Assembly: GCA_001179505.1 (NCBI GenBank)
Contig: CDMY01000718.1
Location: 62,001 to 126,000, forward strand
Direction: 5' to 3'
DNA from: Vitrella brassicaformis CCMP3155
Taxonomy: Eukaryota > Protista > Chromerida
DNA length: 64,000 nt
The stretch's first letter is position 1. The number at the start of each line of letters is the position of its first letter. A program made the translations under genes and the position numbers. Shown piece after piece: positions 21,210 to 39,431 of this stretch. The notes under the pieces were generated by a model that did no database searches, was not told where the DNA came from, and saw only the letters and a list, made by a program, of their open reading frames with translations.

Positions 21210-22339
21210 ACCAATCCGACTGAGGCCTCGAGCGTTTGCCGTGCCTCGAGAGGAAGCATGCAAATGTCTCCTTTTTCCGTAGGGGTAAGCGGGGTGGTGG
21301 AGTGCGCTTCATGTCATGGTGTTTTTGTATGTCGGTACTGGTCCAGGCAGGACTGTGCAGGTGTACCCAGTGTGAATGGGCAGACACACGTTGTTTGGTG
21401 AATGGCAATTTGGCAGCATACATAGAAAGATCTGCTCCCTAGCTTGCTCCCTAGCTGCCCTGGTCTGCCCCCTAGTAGGCCTGCGTGCTGGACATTTGTG
21501 CGCTGCTTATGTATTGTACGGACGGGCAGAAGGGAAGACGAGGCTGACCGTCACACGCATCATGTCTCCTTGAAGACTCCTTCACACGCATCACGTCTCC
21601 TTTCTGTCAATAATGTTTACTTTCGGCATTCGACGAAAGACCAGGGTTTCTGGAAAAAATGCCAGATCTGTCGGCAGCGGTGGGCGACACATGCGATGTG
21701 ACAGTGCTTTGTCTACCACACCTACCTGCCTCCTGACGTGAGGGCTGGTGATTGTATTGTGCCCCGTGCGTGTGTGTGTGGTGTGGGATGGGCCGCGTCA
21801 GCCGACACACAGCGGCAACATTAAGACATCCCGCCAGCCAGCTTTAAAGCTGCGTACTGTGCTGTCTTCCGGTGTGCGCTCGGCAGACAGCCCAGCGACA
21901 CCCACACACAGACACACACCAGAATGGCAGCGATAGGCAGCACTTCAGCACCACCAACACACACTCACAGCCCCGATGATGGCACGAAGTGTCTCTTTTC
22001 CCTCTCCGTCCCTCTCCAATTTGCTCAAGCAGTTGCCGACCAGAAGGGCGGCGGAATGGGTGAGGCGCACACCTGTCCACCGCAGTCATGGGCAAACACA
22101 GCCGCCAGGCAGACAATGGCATACCAGGCCTCGATCCATCCATCCATCCATCCGTCCACGAAGCGGCCATGCGACAGACACACATTACACCGTCCCTCGC
22201 TCCCTCTCTGTCTACGGGGTGTGAGTGTTACGGCAGGATGCTGCTGTGTCATGTCGTATGCTCTCGACACAGCCTGGAACACACATCAGCACACACACAG
22301 ATTATGTGAAGGCAATGATGCATTGCTCTGCCTTACCCT

Positions 22340-25323
22340 CTAAGAGCGACGCGTTGCAGCCAGCTCAATGCTCCCTGTCCATCGTCTCTCACGTGTGTCG
22401 ATGGTGAAGTTGTCGCCGACCGCTGTGCCGGTGGGAAGGTGCTGTTGAATGGCAGCGCGAGTGGCTCCGCTGCCCCACACATTAAGCGTCAAACACTCCA
22501 GGCCCCGCACGGCATCCACAATGGATGAGATGCCGCCTCAACAGCCCCAGAGGGCTCCAACTCGTCGGGCACTGAGGAAGGAACAACAGACACACAGCAG
22601 CAATGCACACACACAAGAGGAGCCAGCCAGTATCGTTTGTTGCAGAATATTGCCTACATGACAACCCCATGTCTATGCGGCCCATCGATGGGAAGCTGTC
22701 CGACCCCCAGCCGTCCAATGCACCCCCAGTGAGACTGACCGAAGGCCCCCGATGGCCCACATCAACAGTGCCCACTTCCCTCTCCGCGCCCATCGCCCCC
22801 AGCACGGCCCTGCAGTCCTCTGCCCTCACAGCTGAGTTGAACTCCACCAGCTCCACCTCCCTGGGCATCTTCTGGGCCAGAAGCCGACCCGCAGCACCGC
22901 CAAGAGCACTGTTGATTTCCATCGAGCTTCGGGAATAATAGAGCTGTCGGGATCTTGGGAACTGCTGCAGGTGGTTGATGATGGTGGGCTGAGGTGAGGG
23001 GGCGCCGGGAGGGGGGACGAAGCCATGGGCGTTGAAGACACACACCGACTCCACGTTGTCGAATGTGAGTGTCTTGGCGATGTCGATGGCCGCCTGGCTG
23101 GGGCTGTCGACGGGGTGAGTGAGGCTATGCTGGCTGATGGTGTAGCTGATCTGTGCCGCCTGCCGGACCAGTGTCTGGATGGCCATCTTGTAGAAGCGGG
23201 ATGGGTGGGAGGGGAATTTGTCGGCATTGAAGAGGGACAGGTCGAAGCGGTGCTGCTCGGACAGCTCCCAGGCCCCTGGTGTCGACGTCACAGTAATGTT
23301 CGCGTTGGGCGTGCAGCATTCCTTGACGAGGCTGTCGACTGCGAGCAGGGAGTCGATGGCCGTGTGGTCGCCGAGCGGTGGGATCTGCACGTCGAGCTCT
23401 TTGAGCGACTTGCGGCAGCCACGAGATGTGAGCACATCCTACAAGACAAAAAACACAAAGACGTGACGAGCGTATCCACAGGATCGTGTGCGGCCTCTCT
23501 TGTGTGTGATGGCTGCCTACCTTGAGCTGCTCAACTCCCCCCTGGTACTCCTCGTGTGTCTGTCCATCCCGATGCTCAATCAGCCCGATACTCTGCAGCT
23601 GACTCAGCGGCCCCTGCTGCCCCTTTTCAGCCTTGGGGATGTGCTCGAACAGACTGGCCCACTGCTCACCCACCAGATAGCCGCCCACGCGCTGCAGACA
23701 CCGTGACGAGCTAATGAAGCTGCCCAACTCATCCGGCCCCCACCCTGTCTGCTCCACTGTCTCGAGTGACGGCATGCGCCAGCCTCTGTTGGCCAGCTCA
23801 CCGTGCTGGCGGACGGCTCCTGCGACGGCCTTGAGTGAGGGGAGGGTGGGGGGCTCGGTGAGGCGAGGAGGGAGAGGGGGACGCTGCCGCCTCAGCTGAC
23901 GGCCCTCCGCCGCACTCATCCGCACCTCTTCGAATGCGATGGTCTCCAGCCGACTGGCCGACGGTCGCACCTCGGAGGGCCTCTGGGTGGCGGGGGCATC
24001 TCCCTGCGTGTCGGGATGGTCGGTGTCGGGAGGCGGCTGAGTGGGGGCGGGCGGGGCGGCCGTGGTCTCAATGATGGTCACCAGCACGTCACCGCACCAC
24101 ATGGGGTGATGCTCAGGGCGGTACTGGCGAGGGTGGCAGAGGGTGATATGGGTGAGGCCGGTGAGCCGTGCTGCCATTCGCTTGACGAGGTCGAGAGGGA
24201 TCTTCTGCCAAAAGGTGCGGCCCTCGGTCGGCGATCGCCAGCAGTGCTCGTCGCCCTTGGCGCAGTCCATGAAGAGTCGTGTGTGGCTGGGGGCCGCCTT
24301 TGCCCACATCTGCCTGGTGCTCTTGGCCAGCCGCTGGGAGAGGGGGACGAGCACATGAAGGGGCAGACACTCCATCACCAACGAACAAATCTGCACAACA
24401 CACACAGAGGCAGGGATGGGTGTGTCTGTATGTCCGTCATTCACTGCAGATCCCCTCTGGCTGGTCTCACCGTTTCTATGCGCTGCTGCTGCTCTCCGTC
24501 GCCCGCCGCTGCACCGTCCTCTACAACACTAGCACCACCACTACCAGCACCAGCCGGGCTGTCAACCACACGCGCGCGCTTGTTGCCATCACCAACACAC
24601 ACCTGGACAGACAGACGCAGCCCTGGTCCACGTGTGTCAGTGTGTCTGTCTGTGTCTGTGTGTTCGTACGGCTTTGGAGTGCTGCCCTTCTCTGTTGGTC
24701 TCGCCCGAGCTCACAGCGCCGCCCACGCGATGGATGCACCGAAACAACCTCCCGTCGCCATCAGAGCCCTGACCACACACACACCAAGCTCTCCTCTAGA
24801 TGTGTGTCTGATGGGTGTGCGTACCTGTTGCTGATGCGGTGGTGTGTGGGTCTGATTGTGCGGGACGACCTTCTGGAACGGCTCCCGCACCCCGTTGACC
24901 GCCTCCACCGCCCTCAGGTACACCACCGTCCCTCCCTCAGTCGGCTGCACGAGATACACCTCGGCCAGCGCCATGCCCCTCTTCTGGACAGTCGACACCA
25001 TCCACAGCCGAGTGCCCTCCTCGTAACTCTGAGGGCCACGGCGGGACGCCAGCTGCACAACACACAGACAGAGGCAACGGAGGAATGAGTGAGTCTGTCA
25101 GTTAGTCGCTGCAGATCCCCCCTTGGTCGGCCTCACCTCTTTAGTGCGCTCTTGGACTTCTTCATCGCTGGCCGCTACACCATCCTCCACACCACTACCA
25201 GCACCAGCAGCAGCAGCCGAAGCACCCCTCTGCCGGTGAGAAACAAGCAGCAACGGGCAATAGGACAATCATCACTCCGCTGCAGCCGACTTGCGTCACC
25301 TTCGCGGTTTCCCTCTCAGACAT
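22340..25323 (-). CDS. Lineage-expanded family protein (copy 1): N-terminal beta-rich module, F-box-like segment, divergent repeat region; last exon frameshifted relative to copy 2
   Basis: Long ORFs 23125-24444 and 22482-23435 are closely similar in protein and DNA to 37956-38756 and 36900-37952 (shared MLTSRGCRKSLKEL, QPTIINHLQQF, ANRGWRMPSLETVEQTGWGPDELGSFISSSRCLQRVGG). The F-box-like call for ICSLVMECLPLHVLVPL is inference. Confidence 0.7.
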
Positions 25324-26015
25324 GATCTCTCTCTGTGCGATGAATGGCTAAGTCGTCTGGACCATCTCGACTCGACAGCTGCCGCCCACCTGCAGCACAC
25401 ACGCCATCCGTCAAGCCATGAATCGCGCGTGTGTGCGTGTCCATGAAGGGTCATCCATCCATCCATCGCCATGGCTTACCGGCGAGAGGCTCTCTGGTGA
25501 GGCTGCTGATCGAAATGCGCTAACCACAGCACTCACGCTGCTCACGTGAGCCCAACCAAGGTGTAGAAGGGCGCTACTTCCTCCCTCTCAACGCGAGCTG
25601 TAGCGATAGCTGGCGATCCATCACAGGACTGCCGCAGCTGGATGGATGGATACGGTGCCGCCCAGCTCATGTGTGCTTGTTGTGCCGCTGTGTCTGCTGT
25701 GTTGCTGCAGATCTCTTCATTCATCTCACCACAAGCCAAGATCTCGGTGGACATGGCTCTGGTGCTGACAAGGCAAGTGCCCGACGATCCACTGACGCTC
25801 GGGAGGAGAGAGGGGAGGGAGGGAAAGGGGCGGAGCGGAAATTCCATTACCCGTTCTGTCGTGTGTTTCAGGTGCGGGAGCCTCGTTTGGTCTCGTCTCC
25901 ACGACAAAACGTCAGCCAGGAAAGTCCGACGACACACACACGACACGACAGGAGCGAAAGCAGCCAAGTGCAGGAAGGTTTTCGTTGTTTCGCCGAGCGT
26001 TTCCTCACAAGGGAG

Positions 26016-29000
26016 ATGGCGCTTGAAGAGAGCACAATTGCGTCAGACACGGAGGTGCCGTCGAAGTCCCGCCTATGTCAAGATCTGCGGCTCACGGAGG
26101 CGGAGGAGTCGCTGTTCGAGCTGCTGCTGAATGTGGTCAGGGACAAGGATCTTGACACCACGCTGCGTGTGGCGGGCGGCTGGGTACGGGACAAGCTGCT
26201 GCACTTGGGGGACACCGCCTCGCACGACATCGACATTTCTGTGGAGGGAATGCTGGGGCGCCAGTTCGCCGAGCACCTCAATGAGTGAGTGAGCGAGGGA
26301 GTAGTGGACGCACTCCTGGAAGGGCCGCCGTCAGTGTGTGTGTGTGTGTGTGTGTGTACACATGCAGCTGGTTGAAGACCCGTGGGCTCCCGCCCCGCAA
26401 GATAGGCGTGATGGCGGGGAACCCCGAGTCGAATAAGCCTGAGAGGGCGACGCTCAGGCTGAAGGGTGTTCAGGTGGATTTCGTCAACCTGAGGACCGAC
26501 TTCGGCACGGAGGACTCGGGGATGCCCTCGGTTTGCCAGACAGGCAAACCTGGAGGAGCTTCTGTCGCCTGTGTGGTCGACGCCTATCCTCGAGACCTGA
26601 CGATCAATGCCCTCTTCTACAACCTGCACGACAAGAAAGTGGAAGACTTCACCGGTCGGTCTGTGAAAAGAGTGACGGACAGAGAGACAGGCCGCTGACT
26701 GATCCACGCTGCGCTGTGCTGCGTTGTACTGCAGGTCGTGGTATCGAGGATCTGAGAGATGGTGTCCTGCGAACACCACTGGACCCCGCCAAAGCGCTGC
26801 TCGAAAACCCCCTGTGCGTGCTCAGGACCATCAGGTGAACGCACAGACATCTGATGGCTGCCGCATCTGAGTCACCCGGCACATGTCATATGTGCTTTGA
26901 TCGGGCTTTGCAGATTTGCGTCTCGTTTCGGTTTTCGCATCTCGCGTGAGCTCGAGACAGCCTGCCGCGATGCGGGGGTACACCAAGCGCTCGCAGACAA
27001 GGTAAGGTGGTGACGAACTGCACACACAGGCATATCACATCACACATGACTGATGGCGGGCACACGCTGTCTGTCTGCAGGTCTCCCGGGAGCGCATAGG
27101 TGCCGAGCTGGACAAGATGATGAGCTGCAGCGACCCTGTTCAGTGTCCCTGGCAGCTGCTCACCTCCTTCGGGCTGGCCCCCGTCCACTTCTTGCAGCCA
27201 GACAGGATACAGTGGAGCCCCGAGCTGCTCGACCGCTACGTGAGGTCCTCAAAGTCGCCCAACCAGATGTGTGTTGACGGGGTCCTCAGCGATGGCCTGA
27301 TGACCGTCAAGAATCTGCACAGTGTGATGAAACAGTATGTCATCAACGACGCACACTCGACGTACTTCCGGGCACAGAAAGGGGGATTGTGTTGTGTGTG
27401 TGTGTGGGTTTGTAGGTTTGTTGAGCAGTGGGAGCCTGATGAGAAGAAATTGATGAGCTACGCGGCATTCCACGCGCCCCTCGCCGGTCCGAACACACAC
27501 AGAGACTCATTGACTCACGTGAAGGCACACACATCTGGAACGAACGCACTGCTTCATCTGGACCAGGTCTCTCTCTCTGTGTGTGTGTCTGATTACTTAC
27601 CGTTTGTGTGCGTGTGCAGGTCTGCATTATAAGGTTGACAAAGGCAGACCCGCGCCCCTTATCAGCCACCTTCTGGGCAGCCGTCTCAAGCTGCCAAGAC
27701 AGGTCGCACAACGGTGAGAGGCTGAGCAGACCACGACAGACCGAGCAACACACAGCACCTCCAGAGTACCCTCCAACTGCTTCCTTTCTTGTTGTGTATT
27801 CAGCGTGGCTCTCATCTTGTCGACAGCTCTCGAGTTCCAGCGACTCGTCGGGGAGCGGGCCGAGGGAGCCTGCCCGCCGCCTCCAAAGACCGACGCAGCC
27901 GCCCGATCTTCTGCTGCATCTCAGCGGTCGCAGTACGGCCGAGTGGATCTGGGCCTCATAGTCAGAAGAGCGGGGCAGCTGTGGAAGGTACGCACATACA
28001 CACACACACAGAGCAAGCAAGCAGCACTCGCGCTACCGACCTCTTGTGTGTATTGTGTGTCCCCAGGCATCCCTGGCGGTGGCAATGGCCGGGGCCATCG
28101 GCAAAACGCCCCTCGAGTCAGCCCAGCACCTGATGTCCGGCTACAGGGCCGTTGAGGAGGCCGTCGATGACTTCGGCCTCATCGGTGTGTGGCTGCGAGA
28201 TCCGCCTCTGGGCGGGAAGGCGGTCAAGGATGTTCTGCCTTGTCTGCCGACGGGGCCCGAGCTCAACGAGATAATGAAGGAGGTAATGGACTCGCAGGTG
28301 GTGTGGATGCTGGCGCACCCTGACGGCACGGCCGATGAGTGCAGCGAGTTCATCAAAAGCGAATTCGGTCGGTTCTGTGGCGTATCACGCGCCGAGAGCC
28401 TCACGTCCTTGAGATACTACCGCTACGTCAGAGATGAGAGCCCCGATGATTCCTCACTCTATGGCGAGATCAGCCAAAGCGGAGAGTTCAGCAGCGAAGA
28501 GATGTTCGGCCCTGTGGTGGTGTCGTTTGATATCGACGGCACCCTGGCGAAGATCGAGAAGCGACTGGCGCTCAGACGGGTGCGTCTCTGGACACACACG
28601 ACAGGACAGAGGGAACACGGGACGTCCTGTTGTGCTGCCTGTGTTGTGTTGTCACTGTCACTGTGTGTGCGGTCAGGTCCACCGAAGCCAGAAGGATTGG
28701 GACGTGATACTTAGTGGCGACAACTACTACCTCGATGAGGTCAGTCAGTGACTCGTGGGCACACGAGACGCTCCATTCGCATGATACACATGCCTGCCTG
28801 CCTTCTGTGCTGTCTGTCATCTTTCGCTGCGGTGCCGCGTCATCGACACGACAGCCGATTCCTGAAGCCCGTGGTACGAGCAGACTGGCTAATGATCGAT
28901 GCACCCACAGCTGAGTCTGCTGCTGCGTTCAGCTTTCCTGCAACAGCTCGTCCAGCTGACCAGACACCATCCCACTGCCCCCTCCCCACCGGCCGACGGC

Positions 29001-29658
29001 GACCCTCCCTCGTCGCCCATCACCATTGTCTATCTATCGGGCCGTCGAGCGGGCACAGAGGTGCAGACCTCACAATGGCTGGCGGCCCACGGCTTCCCAC
29101 ATGGCGTGATATTCCACCGCCCCAAGGGCGTCAAGGGGGGTCTGTTCAAGGAGCGTGTCTTGAGGTGCCTCCACCAGCCGCCAATGAGGCACGTCATCGC
29201 TCATGTGGGCGACCGGCCGATGGAGGATGCTCTGGCCGCTGTCAAGACAGGTCGGTGCACATACACACACACACACACGGACGGAGGCAGACAGCTGGAT
29301 GTGATATGTGGCGGCTTCTGTTGCGTGCGCGGCAGGGGTGCGGCCCGTCTTGATTGCACCGAACGAGTGGACGGGCAGGGCCCATTCGGCGTCTCAGGAG
29401 TGCAATCGGCCGGCTGGATGGGTGAAGAGATCGACGCTCGAGAGCATCGTGGTGGCGCTGCTGGACGACGAGAGCCGTGAGGGCAAGCAGCCGTCGAGGA
29501 GCTCGCGGGAGGTGGCCGAGGGGCGCTCTTTGCTGCGCGAGTCGCCTTACTGGTCGAGTGGTTCGTGTGCTGACTTCTTCGCCCTCAATATGGCAGCGGA
29601 CTTCTGGGCACATATCAACACAGAGAGAGCGGGGGTGGGTCGTGCGAGTGAGGAGTGA
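26016..29658 (+). CDS. Class II (plant/fungal-type) CCA-adding tRNA nucleotidyltransferase-like protein fused to a C-terminal HAD-family 3'-phosphatase (T4 Pnkp-like)
   Basis: NTase motifs LRVAGGWVRDKLL, HDIDI, DFVNLR, RDLTINALFYN, RTPLDP, FASRF and VSRERIGAELDKM, plus the tail WMLAHPDGT. The same exon (ORF 28046-28714) continues into HAD motif I FDIDGTLAK. Later in-phase exons give YLSGR (II), FKERV (III) and GDRPMED (IV). A 5' extension upstream of 26016 is possible. Confidence 0.85.
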
Positions 29659-29834
29659 CCAGGGCGGGAATCATTGTGTGTTTTTCAAGTGATGGGTTCA
29701 GTACATTGTCGATGTGTGAATAAATTGTTTGTCCAATGCACTGGGGATGTGTTCGTTGAGCGGTTACAGCTGGACACAGCTAGACACAATACAGTACACG
29801 CACAGTGAATGTCCATTGCTCAGCCAACGCTGGG

Positions 29835-35996: not shown

Positions 35997-36899
35997 GAGA
36001 CGTACGTGGGTTTGGCTTGCGTAGTGTGAGATCAGTCGTAGCCTCGCAGACGGATGACATTTTTACCAGCGAACGGCTGCCTATGCGCCTTCGTGCAGTG
36101 CCTCCGTTTTTTGGCACACGGAGATTTCTGTGTGTTGTGGGACTTGGCGTGCAGTGCGTGTGGTATGGTGTGCGAAGGTCAACACAGACCTTCCATCGAG
36201 CGGCTCACATTTGGCAGCCGACGTGTGTGTTTATGAGTGTTTGCGAGTTTATCCACAGTGCACTGGGGATGCATGAATGTGTTGTCGCGGATGCACTGTG
36301 TCGTGTTGGTCATTAGGGCTGTTGGAAGCTAGGGACGCCGGGTGAGCAGATGGCACACGTGAGCTGATGTGAGGGATGCATTAACGGACGCTGCATGCTT
36401 GTCGGATCGTAGCAAGACGTTTTTCATTGCAATGAAGAGAACGTGACTGGTCTGTGTGTCTGTCTGTCATCTCTGATCGTGGACCAAGGCAGGCCATGTA
36501 CACGAAAGGGGCGGCAGTAAGTGAACTCGTGCCGTCCATCTAATCAATCACATCCATCCAATTTGCTGTGCATGCAATGAGCTGCAACAAGCTGCAAGCT
36601 ATCTCTCTGCTGGCTGGCTGGGCCGCTGCCCGCGGCGGATATATGCCACATATGCACATTGAGCCCACGAGCCGAGTGTATTGGTGTATGGTGTCTTTGG
36701 GGGTGTGGTGTGTTGGAGGGGCCGCATCAGTCGACACATACTGCAACATCCATCCATCCATCCATCTCGTTGCCTCGACAGACAGCCTGACCCGGCCAAC
36801 GGCCACACACAGCCTGACCCAACGGCCACACACAGACACCAACACACACCATGAGGCCGGACGGTGGATGCATTGCTCTGCCTTTTCCCGCCTCACACT

Positions 36900-39431
36900 C
36901 TAGGAACGACGCGTTGCAGTTACTTCAACTGAACCCCATTGACTGCGTGTGCCGATGGTGAAGTTGTCACTGACCTCTGTCCGAACGGCCTCACGAACGG
37001 CGTCACGAACGGCCTCGCTGCCATGCACGGTCAGCGTCAAACTCCGCAGGCTCCGCACGCCGCCGACGATGGACGAGATGCCGCCGCGGATGAGCTCGGC
37101 AGCAGCAGAGGCCCCCAAGCCGTCGGGCACTGAGGAATAAGACAGACACGGGAGCAATGCACGCACACAAGATGATCCGCCAGAATCGTCTGTTCCGGTG
37201 CGGTGCATACCTGACAAATGCATGCCTATGCGGCCAATCGACGGGAAGCCGTCCGACCTCCAGCCGTCCAATGCACCCCCAGTGAGACTGACCTCATCAA
37301 CATTGACACTGCCCACCTCCGTCCCCGCCCCGAGGCCCTCCAACACGCCTATCATGCCCCCTGAACTCACACCTCGGCCAATCCACACCCACTCGACCAT
37401 CCTGGGCATCTTCTCTGCCAGCAGCCGACCTGAAGAATCGCCAAGAGCACTGCAGATGTACAGCTCAGTGCCCGTTAGGAACTGCTGCAGGTGGTTGATG
37501 ATGGTGGGCTGCGGTGAAGGGGCGCCGGGAGGGGGGTCGAAACCATGGGCGTTGCGGACAATCACGCGCTCGGCCTTGTCGAATGTGAGTGTCTTGGCGA
37601 TGTCGATGGCCGCCTGGCTGGGGCTGTCGACGGGGTGGGTGAGGTCATGCTGGCTGATGACGTAGTTGATCTGTGTGGCCTCCCTTGCGGCCGCCTGGAT
37701 GGCCATCATGAAGAAGGGGGAGGGGTGGGAGGGGATCGCGTCGCTGTAGAAGAGGGACAGGTCGAAGCGGTGCAGCCTCGAAATCACGGGGTGCGGTGTC
37801 GACGTCACAGTGATGCGCGCGTCGGGCGTGCAGCATTCCTTGACGAGGCTGTCGACTGCGACCAGGGAGTCGATGGCCGTGTGGCCGTAGAGCGGTGGGA
37901 TCTGCACGTGCAGCTCTTTCAGCGACTTGCGGCAGCCGCGAGATGTGAGCACATCCTACAAGACAAACAACACAAGACATGAAATGCGTACCCACAGGCA
38001 CGTGTGCGGCCTCTCTTGTGTGTGATGGCTGCCTACCTTTAGCCGCTCAACTCCCGCCTGGTACCGCTGGTGTGTCTGTCCATCCCGATGCTCAATCATT
38101 CCGATGCTCTGCAGCTGCCGGAGCGGCCCCGGCTGCCCAGCCGCTGCCTTGGGGATGTGCTCGAGCACCGCCGCCCACTGCTTACCCCACAGCTGGCCGC
38201 CCACGCGCTGCAGACACCGTGACGAGCTAATGAAGCTGCCCAGCTCATCCGGCCCCCACCCTGTCTGCTCCACTGTTTCGAGTGACGGCATCCGCCACCC
38301 TCTGTTGGCCAGGTCAGAGTGATGGCGGACGGCTCCTGTGACGGCCTTGAGTGAGGGGAGGGTGGGGGGCTCGGTGAGTAGAGGAGGGGTAGGGGGACGC
38401 TGTCGCTTCTCTGCCCTGCGGCTGATGCTGGTGTTGCCGGTGCTGCCGGTGCTGAAGGTGATGGTCTCGAGCGAACCCTCCGACTTGTGTTGTCGCCCAG
38501 CCGCATGACCCTCCACAACGGCCATCATGTTGTCCAGGCACGACACATCACCCTTGAGTGTGATCAGATTGACGAGCCGTCTGCCTAACTTCAATGCCGC
38601 CTCGCTTGCCGTCTGGCTCCAAAATCGACGGTCTGCATCGGTGGCGGCGTCTATGGTGGCGTGTGTGTGCTGGTGGACGGCTCCGTTGCGGATGGGGGAG
38701 CGGTGCGGGAAGATGGCCGACAGCTCGCGGGGGGTCATGAAGCCAAAGAGTGACACCTGGTGGTCATCGGCAAAACCATCAGGGGCCTGAAAGAGGGAGA
38801 GGGGGGCATAAAAGTGGGCGGGCTGGGCTGCGTGTAGTGCTCACCTTGTGTGTCTTTGGTTTCTTGTTTGGAGGCGTCGTGGTGTCACGTGAGGGGGGCA
38901 GACCGGTGAGGAAGTCGGGGAACCAGCCCCAGGAGTCGGGTCGGTTGTCGAGGGTGTCGTCGGGCCGGACGATCAGGCCAAGTGTCCATCCCGAGCTGTG
39001 CCGCTCCTGGATGCGGACCCTCGTTCCCTCGGCCAGCGAGAGCTGCTGCCCACCACCGCCCTCGGCGGTCCACTCCTCGGCTATCGTCACCTCCACTGCC
39101 GGCACCAGCACCTCAAACCTCTCACGGCAACCGGCAACCTCCGTCATGTGCACCTTGGTCCCTCTACTGGTCTCCTCCGGTCTGCGATCGACGACAGCCG
39201 TCACCCACTTGTGCTTGCCCTCCCTCTTGGTCTTCGACACCATCAGCACACGAGTGCCCTCTCGGTAGCGAGTGAAGGGTGGCATCAGCTGGTGGGTGAG
39301 ACGATCAAGCAAACGAGTCGTCACGTACCCACAACACACCGTGATGATGCATGTGCACTCGTGCCTTATTGGCTCACCGGCAGATGCGGCAGATTGAAGT
39401 GGCAGGCAGATGCTGACGAGACCGCCGCCAT
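36900..39431 (-). CDS. Lineage-expanded family protein (copy 2): beta-rich module, SH3 domain, F-box-like segment, divergent repeat region
   Basis: Paralog of 22340-25323. The exon at about 38850-39290 encodes EEWTAEGGGGQQLSLAEGTRVRIQERHSSGWTLG...WGWFPDF, an SH3 pattern (LSL..G..V.I.E..SGW..G...GWFP). ATG at 39431 in gccATGg context. Confidence 0.75.

Follow-up and report, generated by a model that had tools for sequence, protein, structure and literature searches.

A Vitrella gene predicted to join a CCA-enzyme-like nucleotidyltransferase with altered base-reading motifs to a HAD phosphatase

We analyzed 64,000 nucleotides of DNA from Vitrella brassicaformis CCMP3155 (the window, to which all coordinates below refer). 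The window has a GC content of 58% and abundant introns, and scans for tRNAs and Rfam families returned no matches in it. A gene on the + strand (26016..29658) encodes a class II nucleotidyltransferase (head, neck, body and tail) followed by a C-terminal HAD phosphatase. The coding sequence of this fusion gene is 2583 nt long (860 aa, with no internal stops). It is spread over 13 exons (26016-26284, 26368-26654, 26735-26834, 26914-27001, 27081-27334, 27416-27486, 27620-27713, 27804-27987, 28067-28579, 28677-28739, 28855-28873, 28933-29250 and 29336-29658), all separated by GT..AG introns. Most introns contain short (GT)n/(CA)n microsatellites (26337-26358, 27390-27406, 27575-27590, 28006-28016), and the unitigs of the public sequencing runs break at these repeats.

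We mapped contigs from four public runs to positions 25900-29800. Eight introns of the fusion gene were matched exactly by spliced contigs (runs X6 and X1); for intron 1 the support is an X6 contig with its end exactly at 26284. Runs X2 and X3 yielded DNA-like contigs that retain introns. The fusion gene is transcribed; rare editing and the relative expression of this gene and its sister copy (see below) lie beyond the resolution of evidence at the contig level. An X6 contig spans 25900-26284 unspliced, and a start at ATG 26016 preceded by a 5' UTR is therefore more likely in the window than an N-terminal extension like that of P0151, the sister copy. The annotated P0151 N-terminus (47 residues, with a hydrophobic start) corresponds in the window (25642-26015) to an upstream ORF in a different frame.

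The nucleotidyltransferase part was recognized by Pfam, which matched exons 1 and 2 to PF01743 (the PolyA_pol head; E 4.9e-8 for exon 2) and did the same for P0151 (E 1e-21). Motif A, which binds the metals and the triphosphate, is intact in both of its parts, GGWVRD (26175-26192) and DID (26226-26234). An earlier note on this DNA had said as much, and the translation confirms it, with GGWVRD lying just upstream of the position at which that note let the head begin. The third catalytic Asp (26477-26479, the D of VDFVNLR) is kept; its counterpart in the Arabidopsis enzyme is Asp185 (PMC12166844). Also kept are the basic/acidic (B/A) motif R-T-D (26492-26500) and motif E, SRERIGAE (27084..27107), and the RD of motif B, TINALFYN and motif C are unchanged in the fusion protein as well.

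Other elements of the head are altered. Motif B reads DAYPRD (26579..26596), and in its PRD (26588-26596) the first Arg of RRD is replaced by Pro, a change that could disturb ribose or triphosphate binding. Motif D reads ENPLC (26803-26817) instead of (E/D)DPLR: the templating Asp has become Asn and the templating Arg has become Cys. Both substitutions had been described before, with coordinates and translations that proved correct, and our alignment to solved e-type enzymes places RRD and (E/D)DPLR where the window has PRD and ENPLC. A conserved Thr of the motif D element is Ala in the window copy when the gene is aligned with 196 relatives.

Two more elements lie upstream of motif B. The family sequence NPxxSKHLETA is represented by NPESNKPERA (26420-26449), in which one residue is deleted and the K, H, L and T are replaced. 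The earlier note had given this sequence and its shortening correctly but had called it a loop, namely the one that separates CC-adding from A-adding enzymes. The sequence is instead the beta-turn that links strands 3 and 4, and AlphaFold modeling of the sister copy's head and neck (pLDDT 84.6) places NPEESNKPE between two beta-strands (E104-106 and E118-123). In CCA enzymes, this beta-turn sets the primer's 3' end in place (PMC7730189). The loop that does separate the two kinds of enzyme is at 26501-26578, a region of low pLDDT in the sister-copy model, and it is altered too, by an insertion of ~8 residues and an Ile to Met change. Compared to the e-type consensus Yxxx(x)SRxP (PMC7014341), the conserved Tyr (26504-26506) and the conserved Arg of SRxP (26519-26521) are both Gly. 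These two losses had escaped the earlier note and are independent of the beta-turn change. The human enzyme cannot add A without R105, a conserved Arg of its loop (PMC11784652). We can only infer that the Arg of SRxP is the counterpart of R105, because the human numbering has no direct mapping to e-type enzymes. Thus, of the features that mark CCA enzymes, the motif D template, RRD and the Yxxx(x)SRxP loop are all absent from the head of the fusion protein. Nor did it resemble a bacterial-type poly(A) polymerase (PcnB), the NCBIfam pcnB model scoring 65 bits against a cut-off of 305 when the sister copy was tested.

Assembly error and RNA editing were both excluded at the contig level because the motifs are unchanged in DNA-like and in spliced contigs. 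Positions 26440-26627 showed no differences in contigs of X2, X3 and X6, and none were seen in a spliced X6 contig that covers exons 3 (the one with ENPLC) and 4 and runs into exon 5.

How unusual are these changes? A phmmer search of solved structures aligned exons 1-3 to Arabidopsis 9kma and to S. pombe cca1 (9ns2) and cca2 (9ns4), which carry RRD, (E/D)DPLR and NPDQSKHLETA at the altered positions. Exon 2 was also used for an exhaustive HMMER search of 1.84 billion representative proteins, which gave 940 matches; among the best 150 of these 940, RRD was found in 144, (D/E/Q)DPLR in 121 and PRD in none. We also aligned 196 full-length eukaryotic relatives, to which the window exons were added as separate fragments. 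All 196 of them have RRD and both the D and the R of EDxxR. In these relatives, conservation reaches 90% or more in 76 columns of the head and neck. Deviations from these columns number 15 in the window copy, 14 in the sister copy and 4, all conservative, in P0001, the canonical enzyme of Vitrella. Of the 76 columns, 25 concern nucleotide selection or the positioning of the primer; all 11 non-conservative losses of the window copy fall within these 25, and the remaining 51 have none (Fisher p 8e-7, with the classes of pocket columns set partly post hoc and with small numbers of sites, as in all of our statistics). Four elements hold these 11 losses: the beta-turn region (SKHLET to SNKPER), the flexible loop, motif B and motif D. 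None of the full-length relatives is without any of the residues concerned.

The best relative of the fusion gene product is P0001 (605 aa, from the same strain), in which all motifs are canonical (RRD/EDPLR) and which is 51% identical to the fusion lineage, as measured with the sister copy. The sister copy P0151 (867 aa, Vitrella) is 84-92% identical to the window copy per exon. It shares the loop changes and has NPEESNKPERA, but it carries RRD and GTPLR; relative to it, PRD and the Cys of ENPLC are exclusive to the window copy. The sister locus (L001) matches window positions 21898-29538 at 86-89% identity, and collinearity ends outside this block. The two fusion copies are the product of a recent segmental duplication of ~8.6 kb that included an upstream gene. 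We rejected the possibility that they are alleles: collinear flanks are lacking, and sister-type variant contigs were found together with window-type contigs in the same runs. The duplicated upstream gene lies on the opposite strand (window 21898-25732; L001:5127-9769). Its L001 product, of 872 aa, has no recorded Pfam match, and relatives of lower identity occur in the window at ~36660-38400 and ~22400-23800. At the other end of the block, sister homology stops within the last exon at ~29538, and the C-terminal tails of the two copies differ (window 29539-29658).

Both copies have lost the C-to-A switching loop (Y...SRxP) and the beta-turn that positions the CC primer (SKHLET). The base-reading Asp of motif D is likewise lost in both, and the templating Arg in the window copy as well. 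Both retain the residues for phosphoryl transfer, which are GGWVRD, DxD and the third Asp, together with the RD of motif B and motifs C and E. Retention of the catalytic ligands despite only 51% identity to P0001 indicates a scaffold that is still constrained.

Exons upstream of P0159 carry a canonical DDPLR and motif E, and Vitrella therefore has another CCA gene of canonical type, with its head missing from the assembly. These exons (L002:43-420) are unannotated, and the P0159 model (343 aa) ends at the edge of contig CDMY01000524.1. The earlier note had proposed that the window gene is a paralog and that a second, canonical gene should be sought. P0001 supplies that gene and, together with the DDPLR gene at the P0159 locus, upholds the proposal: the fusion is not the sole CCA gene of the genome, and because canonical genes are present elsewhere, it is not the CCA enzyme of the organism.

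The full-length window protein was not found in protein collections, and P0151 was used as its proxy in the tree and the fold comparison. In a maximum-likelihood tree, P0151, standing for the fusion, and P0001 formed a clade (100/100) with the Chromera enzyme outside it, and the fusion branch was 1.85 times longer. Among the searches made, the nucleotidyltransferase-HAD fusion was seen only in Vitrella; no orthologous fusion was found outside Vitrella in the large protein collection searched. We found no paper naming both Vitrella and tRNA nucleotidyltransferase, nor any account of such a fusion in the literature on CCA-adding enzymes, 3'-phosphatases, HAD and RNA repair.

We compared the rates of change in the two copies. 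Exons (identity 0.92-0.94) have diverged about as much as introns (0.93). Nei-Gojobori estimates of dN/dS are 0.43 overall and 0.41 for the head, with a lower value of 0.24 for the HAD exons. Neither ORF is interrupted, and the five indels in the exons all have lengths divisible by 3, an outcome with a probability of about 0.004 by chance. In motif D, three of five residues differ between the copies (binomial p 0.004). The copies differ from each other at seven invariant columns, six of which belong to pocket elements (p 0.004) and one to the other 51 columns. When changes were polarized with P0001, 10 were derived in the window copy and 15 in the sister copy, numbers that do not support faster decay of the window copy. 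The window-derived set contains both the Arg to Pro change in RRD and the Arg to Cys change in motif D, and parsimony points to RRD and ENPLR in the common ancestor of both copies.

The HAD phosphatase core (28526..29228, + strand) was identified by profile match, motif alignment and fold matches. Motif I, FDIDGTL (28526-28546), and motif IV, GDRPMED (29208-29228), provide the DxDxT and GDxxxD signatures, and YLSGRR and HRPKG are also kept. The domain matched the phage profiles phrog_415, annotated as polynucleotide kinase, over the phosphatase part (E 2.7e-12), and phrog_505 (E 5.6e-7). On the HAD part, Pfam and NCBIfam gave sub-threshold matches only, and a PDB sequence search gave only a weak match to LNS2. 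A model of the domain, low in confidence (pLDDT 56), matched T4 Pnkp (5uj0), lipin and the lipid-phosphatase LNS2 domain of Nir2 alike, at E values of ~1e-4 to 1e-3. We infer that the substrate of the phosphatase would be an RNA 3'-phosphate. In the large collection, the sole relatives of the HAD module are P0262 (873 aa) and P0263 (506 aa), which are ~40% identical to it and lack the nucleotidyltransferase part. Both are uncharacterized proteins from other samples, with long N-terminal parts that are unrelated to the fusion gene and contain no Pfam domain.

How does the fusion protein relate to known systems? With the eukaryotic e-type class II CCA enzymes (Arabidopsis 9kma; yeast Cca1 type), among which Vitrella P0001 is nearest, it shares the fold, the domain order, the PF01743 head, motif A, the third Asp, the B/A motif and motifs C and E. 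However, the e-type enzymes have RRD, (E/D)DxxR and SKHLET where the fusion has PRD, ENxxC and SNKPER; their loop is Yxxx(x)SRxP where the fusion has GxxxSGxP and an insertion; and the fusion adds the C-terminal HAD phosphatase. Bacterial CCA enzymes with an HD phosphohydrolase domain exist, and these, T4 Pnkp and the Pnkp/Hen1 RNA repair system combine healing of 3' ends with end modification, as the fusion is predicted to do; the HAD domain of the fusion also resembles the phosphatase of T4 Pnkp. In contrast to these systems, the phosphatase of the fusion is of the HAD and not the HD type, kinase and ligase are absent, and so is CCA templating. CC-adding enzymes (S. pombe cca1, the Salpingoeca a-type enzyme, Acanthamoeba Ntr3 and the Desulfovibrio enzyme) have a degenerate or lost loop, as the fusion does, and they tolerate a first residue other than Arg in RRD (QRD) and a variable start of motif D (PMC7014341, PMC7947759). 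Yet they keep the templating Asp and Arg (xDxxR): the fusion has neither, and its sister copy lacks the Asp. The absence of the templating Arg is also what the fusion shares with the R215A variant of E. coli poly(A) polymerase I, an active class II enzyme. That variant is engineered and makes random A, C and U tails (PMC2532741), whereas the loss in the fusion is natural, extends to the Asp and sits on a CCA-enzyme scaffold.

Because the selection elements are lost while the chemistry is kept, and because the ORF is maintained and transcribed, we favor a transferase that is still catalytic with an altered choice of nucleotide. The retained metal ligands and triphosphate-binding residues likewise favor an active transferase. 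Our reading, to which we give a probability of about one half, is that the gene encodes a lineage-specific, neofunctionalized RNA 3'-end enzyme with a relaxed or changed choice of NTP, one that would both heal and tail RNA ends. The fusion protein would act on damaged 3' ends of RNA or tRNA. Its phosphatase would take off a 3'-phosphate and its transferase would then add at least one nucleotide, with a relaxed, non-CCA specificity. The window copy is predicted to be less selective than the sister copy because it lacks the templating Arg and has PRD in motif B. Mutants of E. coli poly(A) polymerase offer some precedent: R215A, with the templating Arg changed to Ala, is active and adds A, C and U at random, and D212A has little effect (PMC2532741). 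The human enzyme points the other way. When all three template positions were varied in a library whose options included Asn and Thr, selection for repair of A or of CCA left no variant with a replaced templating Asp or Arg (PMC11784652), and for this reason the pocket of the fusion protein may be simply crippled. A dN/dS of 0.4 is also high for an enzyme and counts against our reading, as do the Pro at the start of PRD and the equal scores of LNS2 domains in the fold comparison of the HAD part.

The main rival is a pseudo-transferase whose head neither binds nor transfers NTPs and whose nucleotidyltransferase part serves as a module that recognizes the 3' end of tRNA or RNA for the phosphatase. 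We regard it as possible but clearly less probable. It would explain why the first Arg of RRD, the Arg of the loop and the two residues that read the base are all gone from the window copy, and it agrees with the failure of all replacements of the templating Asp and Arg in the human-enzyme selection (PMC11784652) and with the stronger constraint on the HAD part (dN/dS 0.24, versus 0.41 for the head). However, a pure scaffold has no reason to retain metal ligands, and neither copy shows any change in the three metal-binding Asp residues, in GGWVRD or TINALFYN, or in the RD of motif B. Where constraint was truly lost, at the loop Tyr and the motif D Asp, the residues changed repeatedly, unlike the metal ligands.

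An enzyme that still adds CC, A or CCA by an RNA-assisted backup mode of selection like the one known from CCA enzymes whose templating Arg is mutated, as a dedicated CCA repair activity coupled to removal of 3'-phosphates, is unlikely. CC-adding enzymes do tolerate QRD, a variable first residue of motif D and loss of the loop (PMC7947759, PMC7014341), work that PMC2532741 cites reports correct CCA addition without the templating Arg, and the bacterial enzymes with an HD domain are functional analogs. On the contrary side, the motif D Asp and Arg are kept in all known CC-, A- and CCA-adding enzymes and in 196 of 196 relatives, and the loop Arg needed for A addition (PMC11784652) is gone. Divergence of three of the five motif D residues between the copies is, moreover, unexpected under conserved reading of C and A.

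It is similarly improbable that redundant duplicates are drifting toward loss of function, with the motif changes as signs of decay, a fate that has been proposed for Acanthamoeba Ntr3 (PMC7947759). The raised dN/dS (0.43) and the similar identity of exons and introns are in line with such drift, and the canonical paralogs would make the CCA activity of the duplicates dispensable. However, both copies are intact, spliced and transcribed, with every indel in frame. Invariant columns outside the pocket are nearly untouched (1 of 51 differs), and both copies retain the fusion architecture.

We found nothing in favor of an artefact and consider it extremely improbable, whether through misassembly, an incorrect gene model or RNA editing that brings back RRD and EDxxR. 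Contigs of several independent runs carry the identical sequence, among them spliced, RNA-like ones that cross exons 2 to 5, and the motifs are internal to their exons, at a distance from the splice junctions.

To return to the healing and tailing enzyme that we favor, one extension of it is that the pocket has been actively diversified between the recent paralogs (ENPLC/PRD versus GTPLR/RRD), such that the two proteins would make different non-CCA additions to RNA 3' ends healed by the phosphatase. We consider this eukaryotic heal-and-tag system rather doubtful; if it exists, its targets would be tRNAs that have been damaged, or RNAs of other kinds, and surveillance or protection from ribotoxins are examples of the roles it might have.

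For polymerases templated by protein side chains, the textbook example is the class II CCA-adding enzyme. To our knowledge, both the Asp and the Arg of EDxxR were regarded until now as invariant in nature and as irreplaceable in selection experiments. The Vitrella fusion gene presents a natural, expressed scaffold in which the catalytic ligands are kept and both templating residues are replaced, and it comes with a sister copy that bears a different replacement, a canonical paralog in the same genome that can serve as internal control, and a fused, putative 3'-phosphatase. It is thus a ready system for asking what function the scaffold has when its template is gone, and for studying the origin of new specificities in RNA tailing. 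In chromerids, which are photosynthetic relatives of apicomplexan parasites, it points to a predicted and so far undescribed activity that may repair or tag the 3' ends of RNA.
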